A program made the position numbers and the translations under genes. A stretch of 64,000 nt of DNA from sequence record MH383160.1, one strand, 5' to 3'. Positions 392-63,752 of the stretch are shown here, piece after piece. Every line of letters starts with the position of its first letter. Position 1 is the first letter of the stretch. The notes under the pieces are model-generated. The model was not told where the DNA came from. It saw only the letters and a list, made by a program, of their open reading frames with translations, and did not search any database.

Positions 392-1831
392 TTACATATT
401 TTCTTCAGCAAATTCAGCTAGTGGTGAGCGAACAACACCTTCAAGTTCGATGACACGACAACCTGCCCAATCTTTAAACTTTTCAGTTACATATGTCAAA
501 CCACTGTTAACAGGACTAATAAACTTACTGTCAATCTGACTCAAGTTACCCATAATTACTACTTTACAGTTTAATCCTGCTCGTGTCAAGATTGTTTTGG
601 CTTGTGCAGGTGTAATGTTTTGGAATTCATCAACTACTAGAATAGTGTTGGTGAATGAACGTCCACGTACAAAGTTTAGTGCTTTAAATTGAATAACATT
701 ACGTTTCATAATCTCTTCAATACTACCTTGTGGGTTAGCATCATCTTTATGAAGAAACTCTAACGCGTCAATTGCGGCTCCACAGAATGGAATAACTTTT
801 TCTGCTTCTGAACCTGGCAAGAAACCAATATCTTCAAACTGTGAGTCTTGAGTTTTAGAGAAGATGATTCGGTCGTATTTACGTTTTTCCAGTACTAATT
901 CTAATGCAGTAGCAATCGTAATTAGTGTTTTACCAGTACCAGCAGAACCTAGCAGTACTGTTAGATGTACATCAGGATCGAGAATACTGTTGATGGCGAG
1001 TGCTTGTTGGATATTCTTTGCTTTAATATCCCATACTTTAGCACGTAAAGCTACTGATTGTCCAATATCTTGGAATACCAAAATATCTTCTGGTGTTAGT
1101 GTTCCATCATCTTCCTCAATTGCTGATTGACCTTCGTACACAAATAATACGTCTGCATCATCATATAGATAATCACCGATGCATAGATTTTGTGGAAGCA
1201 AATGTTCAATCAAGCTTTTAGAAATGTAATGATACAAACGACGACCAACTTGTTCGGATTGAATATTAGTATTGGTTAAGTTGCTATATACTTCCCAAAA
1301 ATTGATTTCCAAATGGTGTTGACCAATGTGAATCAAATCACTATCACCAATAACAATATCATGGCGATAATCTTGTACCTCGACACCATAACTTAGTGCT
1401 TTGATACGCATGTTGATATCACGAGTTACCAGTACTGATTCTGTTGCTAAAGCTACCAGAATGATTTTATCATCAGGTACTGTGCTTTTGAGAAGGGTTT
1501 GAACTTTCTCTTCTGAACCTTTAGTACGAATTAGTGCTTCAGCTTCTTCGTTTGTAATAACAAACAATTTGCTATCAGGATTCATATTGGTATGAACATC
1601 AGCAATATTAACACCAGTACTACTAATCTCATCATGTGATGCATCTGCAATAATTGCTTCAATGTTACGAATAGCAACACGAGCATCGCGTGAAACATCT
1701 ACATTACGACTCTTAATTGAATCCAATTCTTCCAGTACTGTAAATGGTAGAATGATTGCAGCACCATCAAAAGCAATAGATGCATTAGGGTCAGATAGTA
1801 GTACGTTTGTGTCAATTGTATATTTTTTCAT
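392..1831 (-). CDS. phoH: PIN domain-PhoH ATPase (PhoH2-type)
   Basis: N-terminal DTNVLL PIN motif; GSAGTGKT Walker A; RGRS and VVDEFQN PhoH motifs. Confidence 0.92.
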   Translation of the reverse strand: MKKYTIDTNVLLSDPNASIAFDGAAIILPFTVLEELDSIKSRNVDVSRDARVAIRNIEAIIADASHDEISSTGVNIADVHTNMNPDSKLFVITNEEAEALIRTKGSEEKVQTLLKSTVPDDKIILVALATESVLVTRDINMRIKALSYGVEVQDYRHDIVIGDSDLIHIGQHHLEINFWEVYSNLTNTNIQSEQVGRRLYHYISKSLIEHLLPQNLCIGDYLYDDADVLFVYEGQSAIEEDDGTLTPEDILVFQDIGQSVALRAKVWDIKAKNIQQALAINSILDPDVHLTVLLGSAGTGKTLITIATALELVLEKRKYDRIIFSKTQDSQFEDIGFLPGSEAEKVIPFCGAAIDALEFLHKDDANPQGSIEEIMKRNVIQFKALNFVRGRSFTNTILVVDEFQNITPAQAKTILTRAGLNCKVVIMGNLSQIDSKFISPVNSGLTYVTEKFKDWAGCRVIELEGVVRSPLAEFAEENM

Positions 1832-1891
1832 AAAACATCCTTGAGTTATGAGTACATCCTTGTACTCGACTAATGTTATTGACTCGGATTA

Positions 1892-2194
1892 TTACATATT
1901 TGGTTCGTATTCAACATAGCAACGTGAACCTCGAACCTTTTCTTCCCAGCACTCCTGGTAAACAAGTTGACCAATTGAAACTGGTTCTCTTGATAGTCCA
2001 TTACGTACTTCACCACTTTGGGTTTTATACATAAATGAACATTTGGACTCGCTACATTGTCCTAAACTAACAACTTCTGCGGTATTGTAGTGAATGTTGG
2101 TACGCTTAGTGTTCTCGTGATACTGTCCGAACCAAAGAACTCCTGCACCTAACAGAACAGTACAAATAAGACTTTTGATGTGTGTTTGAATCAT
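1892..2194 (-). CDS. membrane-anchored hypothetical protein
   Basis: N-terminal hydrophobic helix; 4-bp overlap with neighbour. Confidence 0.7.
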   Translation of the reverse strand: MIQTHIKSLICTVLLGAGVLWFGQYHENTKRTNIHYNTAEVVSLGQCSESKCSFMYKTQSGEVRNGLSREPVSIGQLVYQECWEEKVRGSRCYVEYEPNM

Positions 2195-2511
2195 AATGAG
2201 TTAAATCCATTGTTTAAGTATGTTTCAATATTAATTTTACCAACAGGATTACTACTGTGAACAAAGTACTCAAACGGTTCTTTAATATTATTATCAAACA
2301 TATAATCAATAAGAAACTTAGCAAAAGAATATCCAGTCTTTTCGTCTTCGCTCACATCACCCAAGTCATGGTCGAATGATACAAATGCTGGAATTCCATT
2401 TTCAATAACATATTCACATGCACTTTTAAAGTCACGACATACCACCATATCTTGGTTTGGATAATATAGATTTGCATCACGAATATCATCCAAAAACATT
2501 GAGTAAGACAT
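2191..2511 (-). CDS. cyclic-phosphate-processing receiver (cREC-like) domain protein
   Basis: FLDDIR, SFDHDLG, TGY and HSSNPVG motifs. Confidence 0.8.
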   Translation of the reverse strand: MSYSMFLDDIRDANLYYPNQDMVVCRDFKSACEYVIENGIPAFVSFDHDLGDVSEDEKTGYSFAKFLIDYMFDNNIKEPFEYFVHSSNPVGKINIETYLNNGFNSL

Positions 2512-2520
2512 GTTAAACTC

Positions 2521-3072
2521 CTATAGATAACTAATTAGTAAGTTTTCTTTTTGAACCAGATACTCCAATTCTTGTTTTGCTGTACCGATGAAGTTCTGTG
2601 TCATAAGATTATTATATCCCGCTTCTCGATTTTGTCCCTTAGAATAACGAGAAATATGACATAAATTTACACCAGCAACTTCTGCACTTGCATGTTTAGC
2701 ATTAGTGTATCCATCTCTAATGTGTTTCAACTCGTCATAGCTCACTTCATAGCTAAAACTATGACTGTTTGCACCTGGGTAAATTTCAAAAGTTTTGAGT
2801 GGTCGAAGATGGGAAACAAAAATATTGTAATCCATTTCTTCTTGAACTTCACGACGCAACGCATCTTCTAGTGAGATATCAGTACTTTCTACGGTTCCAC
2901 CACATCCACCAAGAAGACCATCCCATCGTAATTGCAGTAATACTAAATTTACTTCTGGTATATCATTCAACTCATAGTTTTTGTAAGGGTTGCATTTTCT
3001 TGCAAAGAAATAACAAAATACAAAATTTGCACGTGTGCCATATTCACCAAAGGGAACTTCTTTAACACTCAT
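2521..3072 (-). CDS. NUDT16-like Nudix hydrolase
   Basis: LRWDGLLGGCGG...LEDALRREVQEE Nudix box; NFIGTAKQEL resembles the NUDT16 C-terminus. Confidence 0.8.
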   Translation of the reverse strand: MSVKEVPFGEYGTRANFVFCYFFARKCNPYKNYELNDIPEVNLVLLQLRWDGLLGGCGGTVESTDISLEDALRREVQEEMDYNIFVSHLRPLKTFEIYPGANSHSFSYEVSYDELKHIRDGYTNAKHASAEVAGVNLCHISRYSKGQNREAGYNNLMTQNFIGTAKQELEYLVQKENLLISYL

Positions 3073-3827
3073 TTCATACGTTCCTTAATTATAGTCTCTA
3101 GATGCGGTATTGCTTTGGTTGCTGGCTTGATAACTTTTTCATTAAACAAAAAATCATTATCATTTTTACGAATGTTAACATTAACACTATAACATGGTAA
3201 TGCTGCTGCTAATCTCGACCATACCAGTACTGTATCGCTACTACCAATTACAATAACTGTATCATTTTCATTAAGAGATTTCAACACATTATTTCGTTCT
3301 TCGTAAATTGGTAAGCGAATACCATCAACATAACGATGATATTCTCCAATCATTACTACATTTGGTTTGGCAAAAACATCATGTTTTGGTATGTATGGTT
3401 CGTATCCGCAGTTAATAACATTATAATCATCGGAATTGATACTATAATTTTCAATAACTTCGCACAAGTTTCCATGAAGTTTAAGCTCATGACCACCAAT
3501 ACGAGTATAAAGATCGTCCATGTTAGAAGTCATATGAAGGAAGCAATCACCATATTGATCTTCTAACGATTTTATAAAATAATGCATTGCATTGGGTTTG
3601 CATTGACCCAATTTTACACGTAATGTATTATAGAAGGAATGAACAACGTGATATTTCGTAGTTAAACTAGCAATGTTACATACATCATTAATTTTAAATG
3701 TATCCCACAAACCATCATCAAATCGAAAAGGTTCCATACCACTTTCAACAGAAAGTCCTGCACCTGATATAATCAGTAATCGCTTTTTACCTTCATTGCT
3801 TATAAATTTTTCTGATATCATATTCAA
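3069..3827 (-). CDS. Sir2/CobB-family NAD-dependent deacylase
   Basis: GAGLSVESG, SNMDDL, HG, KPNVV and GSS motifs. Confidence 0.88.
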   Translation of the reverse strand: MNMISEKFISNEGKKRLLIISGAGLSVESGMEPFRFDDGLWDTFKINDVCNIASLTTKYHVVHSFYNTLRVKLGQCKPNAMHYFIKSLEDQYGDCFLHMTSNMDDLYTRIGGHELKLHGNLCEVIENYSINSDDYNVINCGYEPYIPKHDVFAKPNVVMIGEYHRYVDGIRLPIYEERNNVLKSLNENDTVIVIGSSDTVLVWSRLAAALPCYSVNVNIRKNDNDFLFNEKVIKPATKAIPHLETIIKERMK

Positions 3828-4052: not shown

Positions 4053-4646
4053 TTAATATTTTAAAACATCAAACTCTTCGCTTACGNNNNNNNNNNNNNN
4101 NNNNNNNNNNNNNNNNNNNNNNNNNNNNNNNNNNNNNNNNNNNNNNNNNNNNNNNNNNNNNNNNNNNNNNNNNNNNNNNNNNNNNNNNNNNNNNNNNNNN
4201 NNNNNNNNNNNNNNNNNNNNNNNNNNNNNNNNNNNNNNNNNNNNNNNNNNNNNNNNNNNNNNNNNNNNGATTGTATGATTGTGGAGAATGATAAATTGTC
4301 CACCACCTACATCTTGTGATGCATCTCGTGCACCCCATTCTTCTTTAAACATTTGACGAATAATTGGAATAACTTTAAGAACCAAATATTGTGAAAATGT
4401 TTGACTAGCATCTTGTTCAGGTAAATTAAGGTTATAATTTAACAACTGACCCATACGAAATGATGTAGTATAACCCAATGCCATTACTTCTTTAGTTCTA
4501 GTTAGTCCATCATCATGTAACTTGATAAATTCTTTCTCGAATACCTTTGGCTCAGTTTGAACAGTTTTTGTAAATCCATTGCTTCCTAACTTATCCCCAG
4601 CAATAAAAGAACTTACTCCGTCAGTGTGTGCAATAATACAGGTCAT
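4053..4646 (-). CDS. HslV/proteasome-beta-like Ntn peptidase (interrupted by an N gap)
   Basis: likely start MTCIIA..GD exposes an N-terminal Thr; ATGA overlap with the upstream gene supports this start. Confidence 0.65.
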   Translation of the reverse strand: MTCIIAHTDGVSSFIAGDKLGSNGFTKTVQTEPKVFEKEFIKLHDDGLTRTKEVMALGYTTSFRMGQLLNYNLNLPEQDASQTFSQYLVLKVIPIIRQMFKEEWGARDASQDVGGGQFIILHNHTIXXXXXXXXXXXXXXXXXXXXXXXXXXXXXXXXXXXXXXXXXXXXXXXXXXXXXXXXXXXXXVSEEFDVLKY

Positions 4647-4903
4647 AAAATAGCTCCAATTGCAAATAATGTTGTGTATAAGATATAAATTAGTGCTCCT
4701 AACAACATTAGGCACACCAAGTATGAAGTTGATAGTACATAATAAATTATTGCTTCGAATTTTGAATTGAACTTCATTGTAGTTGGATCAATAAAGCCAT
4801 TACGATAATCTTTGTAAATGAAAACTGTTAGAAAAAGTACTGTAGCATACATTACTACAGTAGCATAAAAAATAATAGATGTCAAGTTTTGGATGTTTGT
4901 CAT
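4643..4903 (-). CDS. small membrane protein
   Basis: two TM-like segments. Confidence 0.65.
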   Translation of the reverse strand: MTNIQNLTSIIFYATVVMYATVLFLTVFIYKDYRNGFIDPTTMKFNSKFEAIIYYVLSTSYLVCLMLLGALIYILYTTLFAIGAIL

Positions 4904-4973
4904 AGTTATATAATCTCAATATAATTAATAACAAAGGAAGTACATCATAATCATCCTGTTATTTTAATTATTT

Positions 4974-5597
4974 TTATTGTTTGACTGAACCGTAAAAAAC
5001 CAGTTCTGGTTTTGTTAATATTACAACATCTTCACCACGAGAACGACTAACTCTAAATAGAACTTCTGGTGGGATTCCATTTGCTGCATATAGTGAAAAA
5101 AGGAAACCTACCTTTGTTGCCATTTCTTCGGTAAAAGTTGATAGCTGTCTTACAGACACAAATGAATTATCACCATCAGTAACATTACTTTTAATCGAAA
5201 TGTTATGAAGACCCAGTACTGAGCGATTTGTCATATATCGCTTTTCGGGAGATACACTAAAGAATACCACAGTACATGCTGAGTTGCAATACCTAGAAAC
5301 AATTAAATTTATACCATTGTCTCTAACGAAGTTTGCCATTTTAATCCCAGCATCAAAATCACCACCAGGAGATGTAATTGTGATGGTATCATAGTGTTCT
5401 TTATCATACAACTCTATCATACGCTTGAGTGACCCATCTGTAATATCTGATATGAAATATACATTTCGGGTTTCAGGATTATACTTTATCACATTTTTAC
5501 TTTCAATACCAGCACTAGCTGGAAAATTTATTAACAATAGAAACATTGCTGCTTGTACCACTTCAAGCCATAGTCTTTTCATATAACAAGTCCTCAA
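4974..5597 (-). CDS. exported ClpP/crotonase-fold peptidase-like protein
   Basis: signal peptide-like N-terminus; ITSPGG, CNSAC and LGLH motifs. Confidence 0.7.
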   Translation of the reverse strand: MRTCYMKRLWLEVVQAAMFLLLINFPASAGIESKNVIKYNPETRNVYFISDITDGSLKRMIELYDKEHYDTITITSPGGDFDAGIKMANFVRDNGINLIVSRYCNSACTVVFFSVSPEKRYMTNRSVLGLHNISIKSNVTDGDNSFVSVRQLSTFTEEMATKVGFLFSLYAANGIPPEVLFRVSRSRGEDVVILTKPELVFYGSVKQ

Positions 5598-5617
5598 TTT
5601 TGTTTAGGAAGATATAA

Positions 5618-5646
5618 ATAATATAGTACTTAAACACTTAAGTCAA
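5618..5646 (-). promoter_or_regulatory. sigma70-type promoter
   Basis: TTGACT-N17-TATTAT. Confidence 0.6.
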
Positions 5647-5708
5647 ACTTTTTCTGTACTTAACTCAAATTTTTAAAAATAAAACTTAAGGTGTACAGTT
5701 TATAACAG

Positions 5709-5737
5709 ATCATATCATACCACTGATGTTTTGTCAA
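5709..5737 (-). promoter_or_regulatory. sigma70-type promoter
   Basis: TTGACA-N17-TATGAT with TG extension. Confidence 0.75.
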
Positions 5738-5808
5738 CTAGTTCATGGTGCATCTGATGTAAAAAAACAAATATATTTCATACTTATATTTAAAAAAGGA
5801 AATAAAAT

Positions 5809-6186
5809 ATGAAAGCTATCGCAGCACAAGGTAAACTACCATTCAATATCGGCGGGTTTTGTGTAACCGCAGCTAATATAAACGGTGAATTGAAATATAA
5901 CTTGAACATCTTTAATCAACGTTCTAGTTGTGTTTACGATCTCATTGATACTGATTTTAATGTTTATCGTTTTGTAACTATCACTAGTTATGATAAAGAT
6001 AAAATTAGATTAGATGCATCTAAAACAGCATTGGAAATTGCACCAACTCTAGCCAAAAACACTTTTTGTATTAAGATTGACGATAGTGCATTTGCCGAAT
6101 CATTCCAGTTTCATAAAATTAAATTGAGTACTGGTGCGATGAAATATCACCCTTGGGATTTGTATTATTGTAACCTCCCTGGTTAA
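5809..6186 (+). CDS. hypothetical protein (only convincing plus-strand gene)
   Basis: 125 aa ORF filling a gap between minus-strand genes; AAGGA RBS. Confidence 0.8.
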   Translation: MKAIAAQGKLPFNIGGFCVTAANINGELKYNLNIFNQRSSCVYDLIDTDFNVYRFVTITSYDKDKIRLDASKTALEIAPTLAKNTFCIKIDDSAFAESFQFHKIKLSTGAMKYHPWDLYYCNLPG

Positions 6187-6473
6187 CAAAAAAGGAGCCA
6201 TACNNNNNNNNNNNNNNNNNNNNNNNNNNNNNNNNNNNNNNNNNNNNNNNNNNNNNNNNNNNNNNNNNNNNNNNNNNNNNNNNNTCCAAATCTACTTGTT
6301 ACCCTTTTCTCACTACGGTGTATACAGTTTACAATATAGTACTTATTATTTTGTGCAGAAAAACGAACTTCATAATTTCGAAAAGAAGTATTAGGTTCAT
6401 CCATAGCAACTATATATAACATAAAAATAAAAAACACTGTTATTAGAAAAGCAATAATAATTATTACTGTCAT
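6183..6473 (-). CDS. membrane-anchored hypothetical protein (gap)
   Basis: N-terminal TM helix; N run inside. Confidence 0.55.
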   Translation of the reverse strand: MTVIIIIAFLITVFFIFMLYIVAMDEPNTSFRNYEVRFSAQNNKYYIVNCIHRSEKRVTSRFGXXXXXXXXXXXXXXXXXXXXXXXXXXXVWLLFC

Positions 6474-6961
6474 TTATCAAGACCCTTATCATAAATGCAA
6501 TTAACAATAATTNNNNNNNNNNNNNNNNNNNNNNNNNNNNNNNNNNNNNNNNNNNNNNNNNNNNNNNNNNNNNNNNNNNNNNNNNNNNNNNNNNNNNNNN
6601 NNNNNNNNNNNNNNNNNNNNNNNNNNNNNNNNNNNNNNNNNNNNNNNNNNNNNNNNNNNNNNNNNNNNNNNNNNNNNNNNNNNNNNNNNNNNNNNNNNNN
6701 NNNNNNNNNAATATTACTCCACTCATGATGTTCATGCTTTGCTTCATCACTAACCCAGTCTTGAAAACGTCCATCATTGACTAAGTGTTGATTCACATCA
6801 CAACAATTTGGTTGTTTTGATGGAGTACCATTGTATCCAGTACTCAATACTCGATTATTTTTGACAATAACACAACCAACTTTTTGTGAAATACATTTAC
6901 TTTCCTCAGCAACTACTTCTGCTATCTTCAACCAAGTCGTATGTTTCATTATAAGCTCCAA
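6470..6961 (-). CDS. cd: dCMP deaminase (gap over the catalytic HAE region)
   Basis: SKCISQKVGCVIVK...STGYNGTP...CCD. Confidence 0.88.
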   Translation of the reverse strand: MELIMKHTTWLKIAEVVAEESKCISQKVGCVIVKNNRVLSTGYNGTPSKQPNCCDVNQHLVNDGRFQDWVSDEAKHEHHEWSNIXXXXXXXXXXXXXXXXXXXXXXXXXXXXXXXXXXXXXXXXXXXXXXXXXXXXXXXXXXXXXXXXXXIIVNCIYDKGLDK

Positions 6962-7430
6962 TACTTAACAATGCGTTTTTACACAAATCATGAATTTTCA
7001 TAACTCGAATATAGTTTAACACATCTGTTTCATTAATTTCAAATGGTTTATCTGCATATGTAGACCACGTTTGATTTAATTCAATAACAAATGTAATTTT
7101 ATCTGTATCCATAATATTATCACAAAATCTACGAAAATCTTGCTCTTCATCGGAAAGTCTGAAATTTAAATCATTTTTTAAACCATTAACTGTGAAGCAA
7201 ATACCAGTACTGTAACCGATGCAAATATCTTCAATATCATATAATCCATAAATTAATTTAGAGATAAACGTGCTATATTTGTTTCTATGATAATAGTTTA
7301 ATATTTCTTGTTTAATATTAATTTCAATATCAGTAGTTTTTTGTAATGTAAGTTTAATTAATTCTAATGTCTTGATTATGTTATCTAACCAGATATTAGT
7401 ATCATCTATACTTAGGTGTGTGTATTTCAT
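6906..7430 (-). CDS. hypothetical protein
   Basis: 174 aa; KPFEINE resembles KPYVLDE in the neighbouring ORF. Confidence 0.7.
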   Translation of the reverse strand: MKYTHLSIDDTNIWLDNIIKTLELIKLTLQKTTDIEINIKQEILNYYHRNKYSTFISKLIYGLYDIEDICIGYSTGICFTVNGLKNDLNFRLSDEEQDFRRFCDNIMDTDKITFVIELNQTWSTYADKPFEINETDVLNYIRVMKIHDLCKNALLSIGAYNETYDLVEDSRSSC

Positions 7431-7956
7431 TATGTCCCTCTAGATTCCAATCATCAACGAGTTTAGAACAAACTTCCATATGATTATAGTACTTTTCATC
7501 CAATACATACGGTTTATTATGATNNNNNNNNNNNNNNNNNNNNNNNNNNNNATTTCTATATATGAATGACATATTTTTATGCATTAATTCTATAGTTTTC
7601 CAAATTTTCTCAATATCATATAGAATTGTTTCTAATGACAAACCTGTTAACTTGGAAATTCTTTCAACTTTAAACCCTGATAACATCATAGTACTATTGT
7701 GTTTAGTTAAGTAACTATATCCAATAGAACTATGTATTAACTCAATACTATCAGTATATGTGATTGTTTTTAGAAATGATTTTATATTTCTATTTAACCA
7801 ATACCACTTTTTGTTTTTATTATAACATCTATACCATTTCTTCAATATATCAATTGCTTCAGAATTAATTTTTAAANNNNNNNNNNNNNNNNNNNNNNNA
7901 TGATGGTAAAAAATATCACTTTGTTCTTCAGTTAAATTATATTGCTGCATATTCAC
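7402..7956 (-). CDS. hypothetical protein (gaps)
   Basis: 184 aa ORF, probable paralog of 6906-7430. Confidence 0.65.
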   Translation of the reverse strand: MNMQQYNLTEEQSDIFYHHXXXXXXXXLKINSEAIDILKKWYRCYNKNKKWYWLNRNIKSFLKTITYTDSIELIHSSIGYSYLTKHNSTMMLSGFKVERISKLTGLSLETILYDIEKIWKTIELMHKNMSFIYRNXXXXXXXXXXHNKPYVLDEKYYNHMEVCSKLVDDWNLEGHNEIHTPKYR

Positions 7957-8035
7957 CTACCCTAGTAACAATGATTCCTTGGGTATTTAGCTCATATAGA
8001 TCAAAATATGATCAATGGAAATTGATATACAGCAA

Positions 8036-8068
8036 TAAAAATAGGAATCCATGATAGGATTCCTTTTC
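8036..8068 (-). terminator. Rho-independent terminator
   Basis: AGGAATCC/GGATTCCT stem flanked by A and T runs. Confidence 0.7.
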
Positions 8069-8074
8069 ACGATA

Positions 8075-8521: not shown

Positions 8522-8522
8522 A

Positions 8523-8840: not shown

Positions 8841-8861
8841 ATTGAGGCATCAAAATCTATC

Positions 8862-54180: not shown

Positions 54181-54195
54181 TATCCCATCACATAA

Positions 54196-55816: not shown

Positions 55817-55817
55817 A

Positions 55818-56441
55818 CTATATATCCAACCCTTTTACAACATCTACGAAATGTTCAAACACTTCTTTTGAAAAATAACCACCTTCACAAAAAAGCATAC
55901 TAAACGGTGGCAGCATGTCCGATAACTCTTTAGCTAAATTGATTTCTGCTCTTAACTCTTGAACATCAATGATATCATGTACTAAAGATAATTGAAACAT
56001 GAATGCATCTACATCTTCATTCATTTCTGAATTGTAATATAACTCTTCAGGGAATTTGTCGGTTTCGTAATAATAAAAAACTTTATTGTTGAACACACCA
56101 CTAATAGGAACATCATTTTCATCTTTCTTTGAAATGTTTGTTTCCCATGACTCTATATTATTAGGAACAAAAAAATCATAGGCTGACTTTGAACCCTGTA
56201 CTGAATCCAACTTTATTCCATAATATTCCGTATCCATGTATTTCTGCTGTAATGTAATACCACGTGTACTGACATTCACTTGGAATATATCATCTTTATC
56301 TGGAACACTAAATGGAATACATAACACTGAATTCTCAGGGTATTTGGCAATGAATGCATCCAGCACTTTATTAAGCACTGGAATGGCAATTTTACTGTAC
56401 TGCATCAAATCATACATTTTAATTCTGGTCATATCATTCAC
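55818..56441 (-). CDS. FQ-module family protein
   Basis: DAFMFQLSLVHD. Confidence 0.8.
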   Translation of the reverse strand: MNDMTRIKMYDLMQYSKIAIPVLNKVLDAFIAKYPENSVLCIPFSVPDKDDIFQVNVSTRGITLQQKYMDTEYYGIKLDSVQGSKSAYDFFVPNNIESWETNISKKDENDVPISGVFNNKVFYYYETDKFPEELYYNSEMNEDVDAFMFQLSLVHDIIDVQELRAEINLAKELSDMLPPFSMLFCEGGYFSKEVFEHFVDVVKGLDI

Positions 56442-56973
56442 CTGTGTATGTTTTCACCCTTAGCGATTCAAAATCCCATACATCACTGATTGTACCATTG
56501 TGCCTGTAATCATAATATTCTACTAATACATTATACAATAACTTCAACGATACAAATTCATGATTCCACGGAGCTTTATTGTCATGAACACATTTGGTGA
56601 TATAAGGTATAATATATAAACTAAACAACACTAATGGTGAATGTATACATTGCATTTGAAAATATTCTTCTTCTTGCATACAATGTTCAGGAATAATTAG
56701 ATCATAATGTGTCTCAAATAAATGTAAACCTATTGTGGTTTTTTTCGTATCACATGCGTACCATATTGTACTATCCGAAATAAATGGAATGATACCATTA
56801 TTGTTTGCAATGTACATCATATGGTAAGAGCGATTTGTCTTGTTAAATATCTCGATACTTTCGATATTACTACAAATCATGTATTCAAGGCAATCAATGA
56901 TCTTATCTTTAAATGTACCAATTTCATTGAATGACATTGCTTTCTGTACTTTTGATACTGTTGTACTGCTCAT
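56434..56973 (-). CDS. FQ-module family protein
   Basis: QEEEYFQMQCIHS. Confidence 0.8.
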   Translation of the reverse strand: MSSTTVSKVQKAMSFNEIGTFKDKIIDCLEYMICSNIESIEIFNKTNRSYHMMYIANNNGIIPFISDSTIWYACDTKKTTIGLHLFETHYDLIIPEHCMQEEEYFQMQCIHSPLVLFSLYIIPYITKCVHDNKAPWNHEFVSLKLLYNVLVEYYDYRHNGTISDVWDFESLRVKTYTGE

Positions 56974-57512
56974 ATGTTCTCCTTAAAAAAATCCAAATAC
57001 TCTTCATTGAAAGCATATGTATCATCTTTTTTGTTATGCACCACATAATCATAAAGAGCTATGAATGCAGGGATTATGATCTTACATGATTTATTATTGT
57101 ATTTGTACTGCTCCAAATCAACGGTGTTCAATTTAGCAATAAGCATAGCAGCAAAGATATCTTCATGGCGGTGTACTGTGCTGTACTGAAAATACTCATC
57201 CTCTCCAATATCGGGATGATATAACGGTATAACCAAATTATTACGAATTGACATTTTATATTTTTGTAATGCAGCTAAATGCATGAACCACAATCTATCT
57301 TCATGGAAAGATGGAAAAATAATTTTGTCTGTGCTAATAAAAATTTCTTCATTTCGATTATTTGTCACAAGAGGTGCATACATTTTAATTTTTGCAGATT
57401 TAATAATTAAATTAAAAATATAATGAATCTTATGAACTGCACTTGATGCATCTTCGTATGTACTTGGGATTATGAAACTCACTATATGTTCTCCTTTAAA
57501 ATGAATACACAT
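56970..57512 (-). CDS. FQ-module family protein
   Basis: GEDEYFQYSTVH. Confidence 0.8.
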   Translation of the reverse strand: MCIHFKGEHIVSFIIPSTYEDASSAVHKIHYIFNLIIKSAKIKMYAPLVTNNRNEEIFISTDKIIFPSFHEDRLWFMHLAALQKYKMSIRNNLVIPLYHPDIGEDEYFQYSTVHRHEDIFAAMLIAKLNTVDLEQYKYNNKSCKIIIPAFIALYDYVVHNKKDDTYAFNEEYLDFFKENI

Positions 57513-57564
57513 GATAACAGCTTTGGTCTTCTATGTCAATACCAAAACGAAAAAAGCCCATATC

Positions 57565-58071
57565 TTACGATACAGGCGTTATGGGCATGTTGATTTGAAT
57601 TTCATTGTACAAATCATCAATATATAGACATGAAAAAAATACACTATCTTGTACTATATTGTTGTGATAAAGCATTTTAAATACTACATAAAAAAATAAA
57701 TCAATATCATCGTGGACTAAATTCTGCTGGAACCACCACTCGTCTGTTAAATCTTGTGCATTAAAATCATCAGGAACTTCAATGAACGACATATCACAAT
57801 CTTCTTTGTACTCAAACCACATGTCGTCATTCGGATAACGTTCATGCTTCTCTGGGTAACAATTGCTGGGATTAAATGTTAAAATATTAAACCCCGTAGA
57901 GCAACGTTCTTTATTTAAAAATGTATTATTCCATACCTGATATTTTTCACCAACATCAAGCTCTTCTGTTACTGATTTTATTGCACATAATGTACTGTAT
58001 ATTGTTTCTATCTTGTGAACATATTTAAATGCAGCATCTAAGCTGAACTCTAAATCATACATGTACTGCAT
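57565..58071 (-). CDS. FQ-module family protein
   Basis: TDEWWFQQNLVHD. Confidence 0.8.
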   Translation of the reverse strand: MQYMYDLEFSLDAAFKYVHKIETIYSTLCAIKSVTEELDVGEKYQVWNNTFLNKERCSTGFNILTFNPSNCYPEKHERYPNDDMWFEYKEDCDMSFIEVPDDFNAQDLTDEWWFQQNLVHDDIDLFFYVVFKMLYHNNIVQDSVFFSCLYIDDLYNEIQINMPITPVS

Positions 58072-58391
58072 AAAATTACCTCAACTAAAGCAAGGACTGT
58101 ATTGAATTCCACTATACTTGTAATTCCTTGAAGGTACATGTACTTTGCTACTACATATTTCTGTACTAAATTATAATTATTAAATTCCTCAAAATTGTAA
58201 TTTAGAACATAATCTGTACTCAAAAATATCTTATGCATCTCTAATGCACTTTGATAATACGCGTACAACTCACGGATATCAATACTGGTTAAATTATATT
58301 GTTCATATCTATGATACGGGATGGCTTCAATTTCAATACTATAAAACCATTCTCTTAACTTATTAATATCAAATGTATTATTCAGCTTCAT
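58050..58391 (-). CDS. hypothetical protein
   Basis: 113 aa; NFEEFNNYNLV weakly FQ-like. Confidence 0.65.
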   Translation of the reverse strand: MKLNNTFDINKLREWFYSIEIEAIPYHRYEQYNLTSIDIRELYAYYQSALEMHKIFLSTDYVLNYNFEEFNNYNLVQKYVVAKYMYLQGITSIVEFNTVLALVEVILCSTCMI

Positions 58392-58944
58392 AACTCAATA
58401 CCTCCATTAAACACTCATACACACCGTCAATCGCATAAGCACAAAAATTGAAATTAATTTTGTGATTCTTGTGTAATGGACTATTGTGTACTGTACTCAT
58501 TATGACATTATAAAATAACAAACGCACTGGTACAAGCATTGAACCTTGGAAAAATTCTTCCTCTGATTTATATGTATTGTACTCTATTGCGTTGTTCGTT
58601 TCTTTATCATATGTTACCATTACTAACGGGGCATTTTTATTATACCATGCGTACTCTAAATCATTCTTTCCAATAACAGAACCAGGTGCGAAATCCAAAA
58701 GACCAATAACACTACGGGCATTTGGTATATCTGGTGTATTGAATCGTTTATCAAAATGACTCGTGCACGCAATATATGTATTGTACTTCGATGGAATAAT
58801 ACCAATACATTTGTGGAAATGACGCTTGTGATATTTCTGGGCATTATATAAGGCTGCAACAATACAAGCTAACTTTTGTCCCATAAGGATGGCATTAGCG
58901 TAGGTGTACTGAATTTCATTGCTGGTATGGTACTTCGAGGTCAT
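58378..58944 (-). CDS. FQ-module family protein
   Basis: SEEEFFQGSMLVP. Confidence 0.8.
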   Translation of the reverse strand: MTSKYHTSNEIQYTYANAILMGQKLACIVAALYNAQKYHKRHFHKCIGIIPSKYNTYIACTSHFDKRFNTPDIPNARSVIGLLDFAPGSVIGKNDLEYAWYNKNAPLVMVTYDKETNNAIEYNTYKSEEEFFQGSMLVPVRLLFYNVIMSTVHNSPLHKNHKINFNFCAYAIDGVYECLMEVLSYEAE

Positions 58945-59227
58945 AATATTTCCTTTGCCATATCATGGGCTTAAAATCAATAACAGCTTTCTGTATCTTT
59001 TTTAATAATAAGACATCATAACCACCCGTGTCAATCACTAATTGCTGTTGGAACAATTCTTCATCGGATAATGTATTGAAATCTACAAAATAATCTGTAA
59101 CTATCGAATCATTTAAATGTGCCATGTACCAACCTGAACTTCTTGAATAAATCAAATTCCACCCATCGTCATCATCTTCTAATTCAACATAAATCATATC
59201 TGGGGTATACATCATTTTATACTTCAT
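58916..59227 (-). CDS. FQ-module family protein (short type)
   Basis: SDEELFQQQLVID. Confidence 0.8.
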   Translation of the reverse strand: MKYKMMYTPDMIYVELEDDDDGWNLIYSRSSGWYMAHLNDSIVTDYFVDFNTLSDEELFQQQLVIDTGGYDVLLLKKIQKAVIDFKPMIWQRKYYDLEVPYQQ

Positions 59228-59765
59228 AACTATATCCTTGCATTAATAAATCATAAACTACATGGACTAAATTTAATTGAATATAAAATTTTAAACCTTT
59301 AATTAATGAATTCAAATGCATTGTACTGAATAACATTAGATACATCATCTCATGCGGTTTTGTGATTAATGATTTTTGAAATACTTCAGCTTCATCATAA
59401 GGGTCTATGAACTGAAATTTGTCTTCATCATAATTTGTATTGGAATGCTGATATATAAAATAATCATCATTGGTATTGTACCACAAATATCCTTCGAATC
59501 CTGTACTAACATCTTTGGTCAATGGGGATGCTGATACTGGATTTGAACTGATTAATGCACCTACATCAACAATCCCCGTTGTATCATATTCGATTTCAAC
59601 ATCAATATCAATGTATTTCCTTGCGATATCTGCGTTTATGGACAAATATAAACTACCACCTGTCCTCTGACTCAGGATTCCATCTATCTGCGATATAGGA
59701 TGGTTGTTATTGAGGATAAGCATTATTGTACTTATCTTGTGTGCTAATAACTCTATCTCATTCAT
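59217..59765 (-). CDS. FQ-module family protein
   Basis: DEAEVFQKSLIT. Confidence 0.8.
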   Translation of the reverse strand: MNEIELLAHKISTIMLILNNNHPISQIDGILSQRTGGSLYLSINADIARKYIDIDVEIEYDTTGIVDVGALISSNPVSASPLTKDVSTGFEGYLWYNTNDDYFIYQHSNTNYDEDKFQFIDPYDEAEVFQKSLITKPHEMMYLMLFSTMHLNSLIKGLKFYIQLNLVHVVYDLLMQGYSYEV

Positions 59766-59965
59766 AATTTACCTATCGATGGATACCTAGGATTTGTAGG
59801 ATGTAAAATCCTGTCCTGTACTGAAAGGTGCTCAAATGTAATTAAACTCAAATAATAATCGTAATTATCAATACCACCCTTCAAATGTATATTGTAATAC
59901 ATCTTAATACTATCTAATAATGAATCCTGTAATGCATTTAATGTTATCGTATTAATCTTTTGCAT
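59762..59965 (-). CDS. small hypothetical protein
   Basis: 67 aa, overlapping start/stop context. Confidence 0.55.
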   Translation of the reverse strand: MQKINTITLNALQDSLLDSIKMYYNIHLKGGIDNYDYYLSLITFEHLSVQDRILHPTNPRYPSIGKL

Positions 59966-60171
59966 TAATGTTCTTCTCTTAAAAATCGTTTGATAGCATA
60001 ATCTAAATAAAATTCATAACACATGCTATCTCTGTTCTTTATCCATATTTTGTAATCGGATTTTATATTACTCAACAAATAATTTGTATTAATTGTGTAA
60101 TAATCCAAACGACCTAATCGTGCCATTTGATAGGATACTCCGTTCCATTTATTGTATAAGATATAATCCAT
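59965..60171 (-). CDS. small hypothetical protein
   Basis: true start likely MARLG. Confidence 0.5.
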   Translation of the reverse strand: MDYILYNKWNGVSYQMARLGRLDYYTINTNYLLSNIKSDYKIWIKNRDSMCYEFYLDYAIKRFLREEH

Positions 60172-60524
60172 CCGTAATGAATAGGACTATTCTTTTCTCC
60201 TTTAGGAATAAAATATAAAGATGTACTGGGGTTATAACTGAATAAATCGTTGTTACCAAATGTAAAATGCGATAACTCAATTTTCCTTGTACCTGTACTT
60301 GGACGAAGAGCATTCTTAACACCGAAGACTGTACCTTGATATTTCTCGGAAAATTCAAACAATACATCTGTAATTAAATCACGAAACTCCGCATGTATGG
60401 TTTCAAAAAAATCTATATTACACGATGTTTTAATATCCTTGAACTCATTATAAAAAGCATGTCTTGTATTCAAAAGAAATATTACTTTTTTAAGATCCTG
60501 AACTATTTCTGGATTCATATTCAT
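60114..60524 (-). CDS. helix+barrel family-like protein
   Basis: FSEKYQGTVF. Confidence 0.7.
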   Translation of the reverse strand: MNMNPEIVQDLKKVIFLLNTRHAFYNEFKDIKTSCNIDFFETIHAEFRDLITDVLFEFSEKYQGTVFGVKNALRPSTGTRKIELSHFTFGNNDLFSYNPSTSLYFIPKGEKNSPIHYGWIISYTINGTEYPIKWHD

Positions 60525-60756
60525 TTATCTCATTCTGTAACTTAAGCATCAAAATTTGCATATTAATTTTTTGTAAAAGGTGCTTGATAAATTTCTGTGC
60601 CATTTCTTCTTGTTCTTTTGTACCAAGATAAAATAACAGATTAAATTCTGATAATCGCAAAGAAAAATCTTCATCACCACCCTTTAAACAAAAATCCCTG
60701 TACTTTGTAGCGTACAAATATTGGTTTACCTTTTTATAATACCCTGTGTTTTGCAT
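60490..60756 (-). CDS. LGTxxQE family mini-protein
   Basis: LLFYLGTKEQEEMAQKFIKHL. Confidence 0.75.
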   Translation of the reverse strand: MQNTGYYKKVNQYLYATKYRDFCLKGGDEDFSLRLSEFNLLFYLGTKEQEEMAQKFIKHLLQKINMQILMLKLQNEINEYESRNSSGS

Positions 60757-60944
60757 ACTATCTCCGTTCGCAACGAATTTATATAATAATGAACAAATTG
60801 TTCTTGTGAACGTGTTCCAAGAAAAATAAACATATCAAACTCTGTTGTTTTTAAATTCAATGCATCTTTTGTAAAATTCCTGTTGAATTCCCTGTACTTT
60901 TGGGTCTTCCATTCTTGATTAATTGTCTTGTATATCGATTTCAA
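60726..60944 (-). CDS. LGTxxQE family mini-protein
   Basis: FIFLGTRSQEQFVHYYINSL. Confidence 0.75.
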   Translation of the reverse strand: MKSIYKTINQEWKTQKYREFNRNFTKDALNLKTTEFDMFIFLGTRSQEQFVHYYINSLRTEIVCKTQGIIKR

Positions 60945-61239
60945 TGATTCTCCCTGACATACCTTGTATTAGCTTATCATACATATCGAGCATCACTTTT
61001 TGAATATTAATTAGTACTGGCATCGTGCAAATATCAATGTCGTATACTAAGCTGTACTGGAATAATTCATCTTCCTGCATTTGTACTAAATTAGGTAAAA
61101 GATAATTGTCTGCCTCTTCATCCTGGTACTTGAAATGCATAACACCATCCTTTTTGTACAAAAGAATGTCAATATCACCTAACTCTTCTGCATAACCAAA
61201 AATACATATACTCGATGTTTTTGCTATATTAAATTTCAT
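60919..61239 (-). CDS. FQ-module family protein (short type)
   Basis: QEDELFQYSLVYD. Confidence 0.8.
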   Translation of the reverse strand: MKFNIAKTSSICIFGYAEELGDIDILLYKKDGVMHFKYQDEEADNYLLPNLVQMQEDELFQYSLVYDIDICTMPVLINIQKVMLDMYDKLIQGMSGRIIEIDIQDN

Positions 61240-62045
61240 GATTTATATTGTTCCTTAAAAACACCACAATGATAATTTTTATTGTATTGTGTAATACTAT
61301 AATCACACGGCATTGTCCCGCACGAAGCTCTGTGTTTTAAACGTTCCAATACCTTATCGTAATCTTTACTGAAAATGCCATTTTCATTGGGCGTAGCAAT
61401 CATTAATGCTTGCTCATATAAATCTTTTGTTCTTGTTGAACCATGCGAATGTTTGTTAAAATAAAATACATATTCAACTTCCCAATTACTTCTTAAATAG
61501 GATATTCCGTAATTGATAATCATATAATAATGTAAATCCTTGTAATAATTGAATGTCTTATCTGTATTAATCAAAATATATGAAGAACTATCATTGTCCT
61601 TAATAACAAATAAACGACCAATCTTATTTTCTTTATCTTTAACTAATTGTCTAATTTCATCACCTTCTTCAAATTTACGATGCACTTCAATTACAGATTT
61701 AGCAATCCCAGTCTGTACTAAAGATTCATATGTTGCGTACATAAAATCACTTACATGACCTAAACCAACATCTTCTTTTCTTGGTGTCTCTGTTGTATTG
61801 ACAAACATATTCAATAACTTTTGAATTGAAAAATCAGTACTGCAATCTTTATTAATTTTAATTTTTTCTCGAATCTCTTCCTTTAATGCATTAATATATT
61901 GCTCTTGTGCTGCTTCCTGATAATTTGTACCAAGATATAAACTCAAGGCAACTGAACCTTTGTAAGATGCTGATTTCTTTAAATCACCAGAACTAAATTT
62001 TTTCATAATCAAATTGGTTGCTTCAGATTCTGTTAAAAATTTCAT
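61236..62045 (-). CDS. LGTxxQE domain fused to a ~190 aa C-terminal domain
   Basis: LYLGTNYQEAAQEQYINAL within the first 60 aa of 269. Confidence 0.8.
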   Translation of the reverse strand: MKFLTESEATNLIMKKFSSGDLKKSASYKGSVALSLYLGTNYQEAAQEQYINALKEEIREKIKINKDCSTDFSIQKLLNMFVNTTETPRKEDVGLGHVSDFMYATYESLVQTGIAKSVIEVHRKFEEGDEIRQLVKDKENKIGRLFVIKDNDSSSYILINTDKTFNYYKDLHYYMIINYGISYLRSNWEVEYVFYFNKHSHGSTRTKDLYEQALMIATPNENGIFSKDYDKVLERLKHRASCGTMPCDYSITQYNKNYHCGVFKEQYKS

Positions 62046-62081
62046 ATCATTGTACCTTATCTTAAAATTGAATAGGTAAAC

Positions 62082-62110
62082 ATGTTAACACTATTCAAAT
62101 GGAGTGTCAA
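62082..62110 (-). promoter_or_regulatory. sigma70-type promoter
   Basis: TTGACA-N17-TAACAT with TG extension. Confidence 0.7.
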
Positions 62111-62153
62111 CATTGATCTTCATTCTGTGAATATTAAATTTCATATTATTCTC

Positions 62154-62486
62154 TTATATATTGAATTCACATACGTGTTGAACAAAATTCTTTGGAAGAT
62201 GACAATGTGCAATCATCTGCTGTTGCACTTTCTTCATATCTTCTAATGTAAAACCTAAAGAATCATCGTGTACTAACATGTACTGAAACTCTTCTTCTTC
62301 AGAGATAGAACATAAATTCGGTACTGAAATTGTTTTTGTTTTTCTTGCACCTAATTTCCAATGAAAAGAATTATTGCATTTTCTGTACTCAAATATCTTC
62401 AACCCAGCACCTCTATTAAAATCAGCTACTACAATGTAACATGAATTCTTACGTACAATACAATTAAATTTACGCATTATCTCCAC
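62154..62486 (-). CDS. FQ-module family protein (short type)
   Basis: SEEEEFQYMLVHD. Confidence 0.8.
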   Translation of the reverse strand: MEIMRKFNCIVRKNSCYIVVADFNRGAGLKIFEYRKCNNSFHWKLGARKTKTISVPNLCSISEEEEFQYMLVHDDSLGFTLEDMKKVQQQMIAHCHLPKNFVQHVCEFNI

Positions 62487-62722
62487 CTCTCTCCGTCATC
62501 GCAAGAGTACTGGTACGTTGTCGTTAGGGTAGGGACCATGTTGGTAATGGGCATATTATTAACAATAACCGTAACAGGCATAAGAATCGTCTCTACTCTA
62601 CTCTGTCCTGTCCTTGTGCAATTCATCTTTTGCATTTCATCTGAATCCATGAAATACAATACAAATGGTGCAATCCCAAGAACAATACACAAGACGATAA
62701 GGAAATTTAAAAAATTTAACAT
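62477..62722 (-). CDS. membrane-anchored small protein
   Basis: N-terminal TM helix, C..TG...YQYSC. Confidence 0.7.
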   Translation of the reverse strand: MLNFLNFLIVLCIVLGIAPFVLYFMDSDEMQKMNCTRTGQSRVETILMPVTVIVNNMPITNMVPTLTTTYQYSCDDGERWR

Positions 62723-62751
62723 AATTTTTACCCTATGATTAACGTTAGTGT

Positions 62752-62780
62752 ACTATATCAGTAATGAAAAGTACTGTCAA
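62752..62780 (-). promoter_or_regulatory. sigma70-type promoter with GTAC sites adjoining both boxes
   Basis: TTGACA-N17-TATAGT; GTAC abuts the -35 and overlaps the -10. Confidence 0.75.
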
Positions 62781-62781
62781 G

Positions 62782-63177
62782 CTAGTACTGCACTGTTCTA
62801 ATGAAAGTACCTTTACTCATGGATTTAAGCTTATGAACCTCTTCCTGCATACCCTTAATTAACCCTAAAGGTATAGGTAAATCATGTACTAAGCTGTACT
62901 GAAAGTATTCTTCTTCAGATAAAGTACTAACATCTGGGACTCCAATTTTAGTTAGATAATCTTGATGTGTTGACCAATAAATTATATCTTCAGTACTATT
63001 GTACTCCCCATATACTGAACAATATTGATGAATATCTTTCCTGTACCCTTGAGCAATAAAGAACTTATCTACTGCATTACCAGCATTAATAGAATTCACT
63101 TCTATTGTCACAGTACTTGAGCTTGTATAACTCTTAATATTATCAGTACTCAATAATGTGTTCTTCATAATCACCAT
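62782..63177 (-). CDS. FQ-module family protein (short type)
   Basis: STLSEEEYFQYSLVHD. Confidence 0.8.
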   Translation of the reverse strand: MVIMKNTLLSTDNIKSYTSSSTVTIEVNSINAGNAVDKFFIAQGYRKDIHQYCSVYGEYNSTEDIIYWSTHQDYLTKIGVPDVSTLSEEEYFQYSLVHDLPIPLGLIKGMQEEVHKLKSMSKGTFIRTVQY

Positions 63178-63487
63178 TAGGCTCCTGTTTAGATTCTTTC
63201 ATTAGTACTATCATCTTATGTACTAATGGCATAGGAAACTCTAAATCCCATACTAATGATTCCTGAAAGTATTCTTCTTCAGATAAAGTACTTAAATCTT
63301 TAATATCAACGTGCTTGTATATTTTATTTTCGTAATTAACAAATGATATATATAAATCACTAACATAAGAATCATAGGTAATTGTGAATGGCTTACCCTT
63401 GTAATCCATTACATCTCTACATAGACTACTTTTGATATATGTATGTTCAAATGATTTATATACCTTGAGTTGTATATTAGTTTTCAT
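63143..63487 (-). CDS. FQ-module family protein (short type)
   Basis: STLSEEEYFQESLVWD. Confidence 0.8.
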   Translation of the reverse strand: MKTNIQLKVYKSFEHTYIKSSLCRDVMDYKGKPFTITYDSYVSDLYISFVNYENKIYKHVDIKDLSTLSEEEYFQESLVWDLEFPMPLVHKMIVLMKESKQEPNGDYEEHIIEY

Positions 63488-63752
63488 ATTTCTCTTTATT
63501 AGCTTGTTTTGTTTTATGGTGAATTAAATCTATTAATGTAATCAAGTACAACGTCAAATAGTACTCTTGTTGATCTGTACCTAATGATACAAAGAACTTG
63601 TGCTCATAGATTAAAACCTGTTTCTCTTCAAATGGACATTTAATCCTCTGTATAGGCTTAAGTAAATGATAGTACTTATTAAATCTATGATACATTTCTA
63701 GTTCTGTCAGTACTTTCATATTAAACACGTACTCCATTAGCAGTAGCATCAC
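63477..63752 (-). CDS. LGTxxQE family mini-protein
   Basis: FVSLGTDQQEYYLTLYL. Confidence 0.7.
   Translation of the reverse strand: MMLLLMEYVFNMKVLTELEMYHRFNKYYHLLKPIQRIKCPFEEKQVLIYEHKFFVSLGTDQQEYYLTLYLITLIDLIHHKTKQANKEKYEN

Follow-up and report, generated by a model that had tools for sequence, protein, structure and literature searches.

HIP1 (GCGATCGC) and the alternate highly iterated palindromes (HIPs) of cyanobacteria are short, exact and hyper-abundant palindromes, in the case of HIP1 15-300-fold over-represented. They occur about once or more per gene, in all frames and also between genes, are conserved beyond neutral expectation, show non-random spacing and accompany orphan DNA methyltransferases in the genome (PMC5861425, PMC4390886). 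Here we analyze AGTACT, a palindrome with the same properties at 9-12-fold enrichment, in a 64,000-nucleotide stretch of DNA (the window) from Escherichia phage UB, a PBECO4/121Q/RaK2-type jumbo myovirus of the genus Asteriusvirus; the window is 100% identical to its source record (MH383160.1, 353,081 bp). An earlier note on this DNA had proposed the likeness to HIP1, and it stands on the testable points, namely hyper-abundance, occurrence in all frames and in non-coding DNA, conservation, non-random spacing and orphan methyltransferases. AGTACT differs in belonging to a virulent phage lineage, whereas HIP1 belongs to cellular genomes, and in being an AT-rich 6-mer rather than a GC-rich 8-mer containing GATC/CGATCG. 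The phage genome is otherwise purged of palindromes, AGTACT density peaks in direct terminal repeats, the phage's methylase is only a candidate, and a gene block free of ACT has no counterpart in HIP1 biology. AGTACT works like a HIP but is not HIP1.

Other described systems share some of these features. Escherichia coli Chi (GCTGGTGG) is likewise a short, exact word, about 7-10-fold over-represented genome-wide, that serves as a self-mark for a DNA-processing machine, but Chi is an asymmetric word that RecBCD reads on a single strand, whereas AGTACT is palindromic with symmetric flanks. The ScaI restriction-modification system has the identical recognition word and the same all-or-none exactness. 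The phage, however, has neither a RE_ScaI endonuclease nor an N4/N6 (PF01555) methylase, and a target of the kind that phages normally avoid is here multiplied. In Mollivirus, AGTACT carries orphan methylation made by a virus-encoded enzyme (PMC7253447). MazF-escaping ACA-less transcripts resemble the ACT-free block in that a 3-nt word is wholly missing from the sense strand in every frame; in the phage, by contrast, the banned word is ACU and the block is natural, conserved, 2-8 kb long and made up of many genes.

We find that AGTACT is a highly iterated palindrome of enterobacterial RaK2-like jumbo phages and is selected at the level of double-stranded DNA. Tentatively, and at somewhat less than an even chance, we read it as a methylated, HIP1-like self-mark to which an ACU-free, RNase-immune island of genes adds a second layer. 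The site-free island with its ban on sense ACT, the link to the terminal repeats and the clade-wide distribution go beyond the earlier note.

Abundance, form and selection of AGTACT

The window holds exactly 185 copies of AGTACT, against 16.7 ± 4.2 (largest value 28) in 100 dinucleotide-preserving shuffles and 21 by base composition, which confirms the hand count of the earlier note (about 185 versus about 22 expected) and makes the excess larger than put there. No hexamer is more frequent by absolute count, and the longer form CAGTACTG has 42 copies where about 0.5 would be expected. The sites fall into the following zones.

891-53302, no strand: main AGTACT field of 171 sites, about 3.3 per kb, often as CAGTACTG, with consensus TTCAGTACTGAA
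53371-61012, minus strand: ACT-free block of 7,643 nt, with a sense strand that lacks ACT (equivalently, a plus strand that lacks AGT)
61013-64000, no strand: mixed zone that comes before the ACT-free block when read in sense, with 14 AGTACT and 12 TGTACT

The earlier note had placed sites across 891-63714. Both ends of that range are right, but the range is interrupted: 171 sites lie in 891–53302 and 14 in 61013–63714, with none in 53303–61012, where TGTACT on the plus strand substitutes for them. GTAC density is highest in the mixed zone, at about 12 per kb.

All window genes lie on the minus strand, GC content is 32.5%, and a record position equals the window position plus 124000. Across the window's three unmasked parts the comparison with the record gave 0 mismatches and a single offset of +124000 on either side of each N run. 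Because this offset is constant across every run, the runs are exact-length masks and leave frame and continuity intact.

4087-8636, no strand: seven masked N runs, clustered, all exact-length masks
53528-53582: one more masked N run, 55 nt, inside the ACT-free block

Statistics based on coding sequences (CDS) exclude window positions 4053–8861, and in whole-genome counts the masked window, Ns included, represents record positions 124001–188000.

The excess is independent of coding. Among the 174 analysable window sites, 149 are genic, spread along the length of the genes, and 24 are non-coding (3.05 per kb in coding and 2.3 per kb in non-coding DNA). The codon phases across 105 annotated CDS are 66/31/53, so the claim that AGTACT occurs in all three phases holds, as do the contexts quoted for it: GGT AGT ACT CTG (VGSTLWT, site 10904), GGA GTA CTG (LDGVLLV, site 10920) and, in the KMDGQY motif, GGT CAG TAC TTG (site 12158).

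10904-10925, minus strand: two sites in a Ser/Thr phosphatase gene, in phase 0 (GSTL) and phase 2 (GVL)
12158-12163, minus strand: phase 1 site in ligase motif I (KMDGQY)

A promoter or terminator element was rejected on the same count of 149 genic sites in 174; only a minority of the terminal-repeat copies are promoter-associated.

Synonymous-codon shuffles, in which codons were permuted within each gene so that protein and per-gene codon usage stayed unchanged, gave 41.3 ± 5.2 AGTACT in the window against 150 observed (z = 21). Genome-wide (419 ORFs) 185 were expected and 650 observed (z ≈ 40). The excess thus persists under a shuffle that preserves both protein and codons, and permutation of whole codons lowers the window expectation to 19 ± 4.

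A functionless origin, in which AGTACT arises through the usage of codons or dipeptides or through biased repair of the Vsr type that turns near-cognate words into it, is very unlikely on these figures. Codon usage does lift the expectation, which is 19 when whole codons are permuted and 41 when synonymous codons are shuffled, and the deamination neighbours AGTATT and AATACT stand 13-18% under expectation, as such repair would have it. The surplus nevertheless remains 3.5-fold over protein- and codon-preserving shuffles (z = 21-40) and extends to non-coding DNA; the roughly 70 missing neighbour words are far fewer than the surplus of 465; and neither the even spacing nor the conservation at synonymous positions described below is what a by-product would show. 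No Vsr-like or MutH homologue was found in the phage, the one weak match being full of stop codons. A codon or dipeptide artefact is ruled out by the synonymous and whole-codon shuffles, and Vsr-like repair was rejected as a source because a neighbour depletion of just 13-18% falls well short of the surplus.

The enriched unit is sharply defined. In a scan of 4- to 8-mers against the synonymous-codon null, all top words were nested in the palindrome TTCAGTACTGAA (observed versus expected: CAGTACTG 38 versus 3.2, TTCAGTAC 33 versus 6.2, GTACTGAA 17 versus 2.9). With sites aligned in sense orientation the flanks are dyad-symmetric, with C at -1 and G at +6 in 43–45% each; each flank contributes about 0.3 bit, and almost all information resides in the exact hexamer. 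One-mismatch neighbours of AGTACT stand at 0.8–1.6 times expectation, which is no enrichment, and the excess extends to neither AGTACN nor NGTACT but is confined to the full palindrome. Because the information is confined to the hexamer, the flanks are symmetric and the neighbours are not enriched, the unit is an exact, symmetric, double-stranded hexamer. Such exactness would be typical of restriction/modification-type enzymes rather than of operator-binding regulators.

Mimicry of sites for the host nucleoid-occlusion factor SlmA (GTGAGTACTCAC), by which the phage would manipulate cell division, is scarcely credible. The SlmA site shares the AGTACT core and SlmA is present in the enterobacterial hosts of the clade (PMC3020112), but the factor needs G1, T2, A4 and G5 with a purine at position 3, and the phage half-site is TTCAGT. 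The 353 kb of the genome contain no GTRAGTACTYAC and just 4 copies of GAGTACTC, and G is depleted at -1 (8%). We rejected identity with SlmA sites since the flanks do not fit.

Orthologous genes (16–23 from each of four other genera, with 51–58% amino-acid identity) provide a measure of conservation. The aligned hexamer is identical in the other genus at 21–29% of UB AGTACT sites, compared with 8–10% of control hexamers, and where the residues are unchanged AGTACT is identical at 36 of 47 positions (77%) versus about 31% for controls. Synonymous positions are therefore conserved, and together with the synonymous shuffles this upholds the earlier note's argument for selection on nucleic acid rather than protein. 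About three quarters of the sites differ in place between genera while density is maintained, which indicates site turnover under constant demand.

Sites are also spaced more evenly than at random, with a coefficient of variation of 0.79 versus 0.99 ± 0.08 (p ≈ 0.001–0.009 in three regions) and a longest gap in the terminal-repeat zone of 539 bp (p = 0.004). Of 35 genes measuring 400–600 nt, a single one is without AGTACT, against 6.2 expected; as spacing is more even than chance, nearly every gene of at least 400 nt carries the word.

Two words are conversely scarce in the window CDS, TAAATA (12 versus 41) and TATTTA (8 versus 43). This 3- to 5-fold depletion fits avoidance of the T4-type late promoter TATAAATA that the CBB paper predicted for the clade.

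Clade distribution, terminal repeats and a candidate methylase

AGTACT is enriched in five genomes of the clade.

UB, Asteriusvirus: 903 AGTACT, 9.0 times expectation
EJP2, Asteriusvirus: 1,312 AGTACT, 10.3 times expectation
Munch, unassigned Salmonella phage: 850 AGTACT, 8.7 times expectation
KP13-7, Alcyoneusvirus: 954 AGTACT, 11.7 times expectation
CBB, Mimasvirus: 1,235 AGTACT, 11.3 times expectation

The outgroup jumbo phages Phosso (1 versus 4 expected) and XacN1 (0 versus 6) show no excess. In each of the five enriched genomes AGTACT is the sole palindromic hexamer above twice its expectation. Other palindromes are purged: 21 of the 64 palindromic hexamers have zero copies in UB, among them CCATGG (0 versus 47), GCATGC (0 versus 39), GGATCC and TGGCCA, and the GTAC-core palindromes GGTACC (0 versus 32) and CGTACG (0 versus 18) are likewise missing. 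GCGC is absent from all five enriched genomes, against 126–330 expected (one figure being 0 versus 180). With 21 palindromic hexamers and GCGC gone from the UB genome, the statement of the earlier note that phages avoid palindromes applies here. Beside this purge, GATC stands at 0.6 times expectation.

That palindromes are purged while one of them is multiplied ten-fold and selected in at least five genera implies a machine that reads AGTACT on phage DNA. Its all-or-none exactness and its escape from the purge make AGTACT probably a restriction/modification-type target that is protected in the virion. The host shows no comparable abundance, with 400 AGTACT in the 4.64 Mb of E. coli K-12 compared with 1,147 for a control word of the same composition; density is about 30-fold higher in the phage and about 74-fold higher in its terminal repeat. 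The earlier note named four possible uses, namely self/non-self discrimination, recombination, DNA organisation and packaging. A density 30- to 74-fold above that of the host, together with saturated terminal repeats, would speak for a self-mark or for a role at the genome ends.

Asteriusvirus genomes have fixed ends and direct terminal repeats that measure about 21 kb, as described in fEgEco12 by PhageTerm and digests (PMC13070987) and in Sharanji (PMC11895373), and those of CBB measure 22.5 kb (PMC5259590). The fEgEco12 repeat (1–20,993) contains 138 AGTACT (6.6 per kb); the sites start about 100 bp from the physical end, 17 of them lie in the CDS-free first 1.7 kb, and the run ceases at the repeat boundary. 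CBB has 6.4 per kb in both repeats versus 2.85 per kb in unique DNA, and the equivalent zone of UB (record ~193–214 kb) has 6.35 per kb versus 2.3 per kb elsewhere. Inside the repeat, density is 10.6 per kb in non-coding and 4.6 per kb in coding DNA. Some of the repeat sites directly adjoin the -10 box of early promoters of the σ70 type, as in TTGACT-N8-CAGTACTG-TATAAT, and do so mostly in one orientation: fEgEco12 has 11 forward copies of AGTACTGTATAAT and one reverse copy, and CBB has AGTACT-N0–4-TATAAT 17 times forward and 0 times in reverse.

These placements bear on a possible but doubtful alternative, a dimeric sequence-specific DNA-binding protein, encoded by the phage or possibly co-injected, that would bind AGTACT without any methylation. 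It could coat or organize the genome, protect the entering end or use the sites as operators at early promoters. The dyad-symmetric 12-bp consensus TTCAGTACTGAA would suit a dimer, as would a density that peaks in non-coding terminal-repeat DNA from about 100 bp of the physical end and a fixed place beside the -10 box (11 versus 1 in fEgEco12, 17 versus 0 in CBB). Even spacing suits a role in coverage, and without a chimallin nucleus the DNA of these phages is exposed in the cytoplasm (PMC11895373). Operator-binding proteins, however, tolerate near-cognate sites, and here neighbours are not enriched and each flank carries about 0.3 bit. Most sites are genic and in all phases, no candidate protein was found, and binding leaves unexplained why one palindrome escaped a purge of 21.

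Chi itself is about 10-fold enriched in all five genomes (UB 25 versus 2.5, CBB 38 versus 3.0), concentrated in the terminal repeats and strand-biased (UB record 193-214 kb; CBB 1-22456 and 355924-378379). RecBCD is therefore already addressed by true Chi, and AGTACT is a separate signal. With Chi enriched in its own right, and AGTACT a palindrome with symmetric flanks, a Chi-type hotspot was rejected.

The ends of the repeats have further features. An inverted Chi pair, CCACCAGC-TTGT-GCTGGTGG, lies at fEgEco12 578-597, about 580 bp from the physical left end, and in the same non-coding end an early-promoter core, GTATAATGTTnTACAT, is repeated at 387-402, 1684-1699 and 2144-2159. Short repeats of the CTAGACGG/CTGGATGG type at 780-915 may serve in end recognition or packaging. 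On the inner side of the terminal-repeat boundary, and adjoining it, comes a zone of 2.5-4.7 kb without AGTACT and with scarce GTAC (UB record 188902-193640, fEgEco12 20994-25500, Munch record 21027-23535). The GTAC that it does contain is mostly sense TGTACT (8 of 11 in fEgEco12), and the zone shows no 3-mer ban, only a low number of GTAC. A diverging polarity of this zone and the ACT-free block would thus rest on few sites, and we do not argue for it.

A candidate writer for an AGTACT mark lies in the window, in a module defined by the record annotation.

29142-29663, minus strand: orphan DNA N6-adenine methyltransferase of the PF05869 'Dam' family, 173 aa (Pfam E = 6e-32; TIGR01712)
28612-29145, minus strand: 'cytidylyltransferase' by annotation, adjoining the PF05869 gene, with no Pfam match at E ≤ 0.01
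2521-3821, 10424-21851 and 28612-29663, minus strand: nucleic-acid repair/takeover module by record annotation

The PF05869 gene is present as a single copy in 5 of 5 AGTACT-rich genomes and in 0 of 2 outgroups, and we consider its product the best candidate for the enzyme that would write the mark. UB also has an orphan, short C5 methylase (PF00145; record 286.4–287.3 kb), which is unlikely as writer since it is absent from Munch, whose AGTACT enrichment remains. Neither RE_ScaI (PF09569) nor the N4/N6 family (PF01555) was found in six frames of the whole UB record, and a ScaI-type restriction-modification system was rejected accordingly. The DNA of fEgEco12 is cut normally by ten ordinary enzymes, ScaI and RsaI not among them (PMC13070987), so that blanket hypermodification is absent.

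By annotation the module comprises a Nudix hydrolase, a Sir2-like protein, a protease, two Ser/Thr phosphatases, a DNA ligase, a polynucleotide kinase/phosphatase and RNA ligase 1 (a T4-like tRNA repair set).

A gene block without sense ACT

Within the ACT-free block the sense strand contains 0 ACT against 138–147 expected, non-coding parts included. All phases are affected (0 in phases 0, 1 and 2 against about 40, 27 and 29 expected), and the threonine codon ACT makes up 0% in the block versus 42% outside it. Sense AGT is normal in number (190). In a scan of free runs for all 64 trinucleotides this run is the unique outlier, as the next-best free run of any other trinucleotide in UB spans only about 25 expected copies. 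The total exclusion of sense ACT accounts for the lack of AGTACT.

GTAC itself persists in the block, with 68 copies, of which, on the plus strand, 60 are preceded by T and none by A; 40 are TGTACT, which reads AGTACA in sense. AGTACA occurs 30 times versus 9.7 ± 2.6 under a protein-preserving expectation, about 3-fold enriched, in phases 12/10/8. Since AGTACA is still enriched while ACT is absent, the pressure for the palindrome continues in the block, where the ban on ACT overrides it. No ACT-free word is closer to AGTACT than AGTACA, its replacement there.

The block is conserved. The aligned positions of G17, PBECO4, 121Q and phAPEC6 show the same words; as these phages were sequenced independently of one another, on three continents, an artefact of a single record was rejected. 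Runs of the same kind occur in other genomes.

UB: sense ACT-free run of 7,643 nt, 147 ACT expected
fEgEco12, 29020-37311: sense ACT-free run of 8,293 nt, 160 ACT expected
Munch, record 25613-27566: sense ACT-free run of 1,955 nt, 38 ACT expected
EJP2, record 14819-17007: run of 2.2 kb interrupted by one ACT, about 50 expected

All four phages have the run on the sense strand, a few kb past the terminal repeat; no such run was found in KP13-7 or CBB. In UB the last sense ACT before the block belongs to the AGTACT at 61013-61018, which sits 9 nt upstream of a σ70-like −35/−10 pair (61004–60976, minus strand), and the run ends 10 nt into the next gene downstream (53040–53378). The block contains at least 11 genes of about 100-200 aa that are ORFans (Pfam and PHROGs returned ORFan families only).

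A ban that is specific to the sense strand and independent of frame, in a co-oriented block that begins at a promoter, would fit transcript immunity from a sequence-specific endoribonuclease. Most likely, the transcripts of the block are ACU-free and thus immune to a putative ACU-cutting enzyme. Members of the MazF family recognize targets of 3–7 nt, and one enterobacterial enzyme, MazF-SEA, cuts U^ACU and U^ACG (PMC10864209). UACG occurs in the block, so the ban does not match MazF-SEA.

The same enzymes suggest a signal in RNA. AGUACU contains UACU, a MazF/PemK-type cleavage site of enterobacteria, and the sites might programme decay of phage mRNA or soak up the enzyme, with the ACU-free block as a protected regulon. 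A ban confined to the sense strand in all phases and the presence of at least one AGTACT in nearly every gene would be expected of such a signal. We consider it distinctly improbable even so: the dyad-symmetric flanks in sense alignment indicate a double-stranded reader, sites are densest in non-coding repeat DNA and occur within promoter spacers, and ACU is frequent anyway, so that the hexamer gives no added sensitivity. UACG in the island is again a mismatch with MazF-SEA, and the phage lacks a PemK or RegB homologue.

It is also unlikely that the sites are a single-strand replication or recombination signal with an ACT core, such as the start site of a phage primase or the site of a nickase. 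The palindrome would then serve both strands, and the ACT-free block would be a strand that is never primed or nicked. Primases do read trinucleotides on single strands (GTC in T7, GTT/GCT in T4). This model would accommodate the total exclusion of a 3-mer from one strand only over 2-8 kb, the even, sub-kilobase spacing of sites, the fixed distance of the block from the terminal repeat in four phages and the selection of AGTACA, which keeps the word on the other strand only. ACT is common everywhere, however, which makes enrichment of the hexamer needless, and only the full palindrome is enriched rather than AGTACN or NGTACT. The ban falls on the sense strand of co-oriented genes and has a promoter-like start, which an RNA-level cause suits better, and there is no skew switch or origin signature by the block. 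A replication origin between two palindrome-free zones was likewise rejected, because neither a GC/AT-skew switch nor another origin signature was found near the block.

The surroundings of the block contain repeated genes. Eight tandem paralogues of about 150-165 aa lie at 43420-43902, 44651-45121, 48932-49381 and 49997-52318 (minus strand), with three smaller paralogue families also in 43420-52318 (minus strand). No BLAST links connect the block genes to neighbouring arrays, and a paralogous origin was rejected. In paralogous small genes upstream of the block, a 35-67-nt repeat with TGTACTAA..TGTACTGAAA..TTCTTCTTC occurs in 3-4 copies (window 62265-63311 and 61040-61074).

A proposed methylated self-mark and its implications

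In the reading that we prefer, the putative PF05869 methylase would write a mark on the roughly 900 AGTACT sites of UB, in parallel with what has been proposed for HIP1 and its orphan methylases. The result would be a dense, methylation-based self-mark, by which a phage function could tell phage from host DNA or parental from new DNA and which may be read during takeover, replication/repair or packaging. The island would consist of co-oriented genes with ACU-free transcripts, in which AGTACA takes the place of the palindrome under the ban.

Several points weigh against this reading. Methylation alone leaves the benefit of more sites unexplained, and a DNA-binding protein would account just as well for the copies in promoter spacers and for the excess in the non-coding DNA of the repeats. 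Characterized PF05869 members act on GATC or non-specifically. The co-occurrence of the PF05869 gene with AGTACT enrichment (5 of 5 versus 0 of 2) is confounded by phylogeny, and the enzyme's nearest homologues beyond the clade reach no more than 43% identity, so that no specificity can be transferred from them. No D12 methylase or MutH family was found in the phage, in addition to the absence of RE_ScaI and N4/N6 families, and no reader protein was found for AGTACT. We found neither a methylome nor a ScaI/RsaI digest for any clade member. As for the island, its upstream edge falls within an annotated gene, no PemK/MazF or RegB homologue was found in the phage, and we know of no ACU-specific RNase.

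A broader proposal, which we regard as speculative and on balance improbable, is a two-layer private identity system in nucleus-less RaK2-like phages, with AGTACT as the methylated self-mark and an ACU-free operon that survives an ACU-specific RNase. These phages form no chimallin nucleus and expose their DNA in the cytoplasm (PMC11895373). Terminal repeats saturated with AGTACT would enter the cell first, and the RNase would be released by phage or host during takeover. If this is true, AGTACT would be the first highly iterated palindrome of a phage to have a defined use, and the ACU-free operon would be the first case in a virus of a natural, multi-gene immunity operon that is 'codon-word-free'.

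In the literature on the clade and related topics, subscription journals (e.g. the GAP32 paper) not included, we found no mention of an excess of AGTACT, a purge of palindromes or an ACT-free block in these phages. As far as we found, the block has not been described before, and it suggests that phage-host conflict, or gene regulation in the phage, has a layer that works through an RNase. AGTACT sites offer a simple diagnostic signature of the group, which is under development for therapy and biocontrol, and a handle on it (by ScaI/RsaI digestion or methylome). The purpose of cyanobacterial HIP1 has been open for about 30 years, and these phages offer a fast genetic system with a single candidate methylase. 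Collectively, the findings bear on how a 350-kb genome may be protected and recognized in jumbo phages that build no nucleus.

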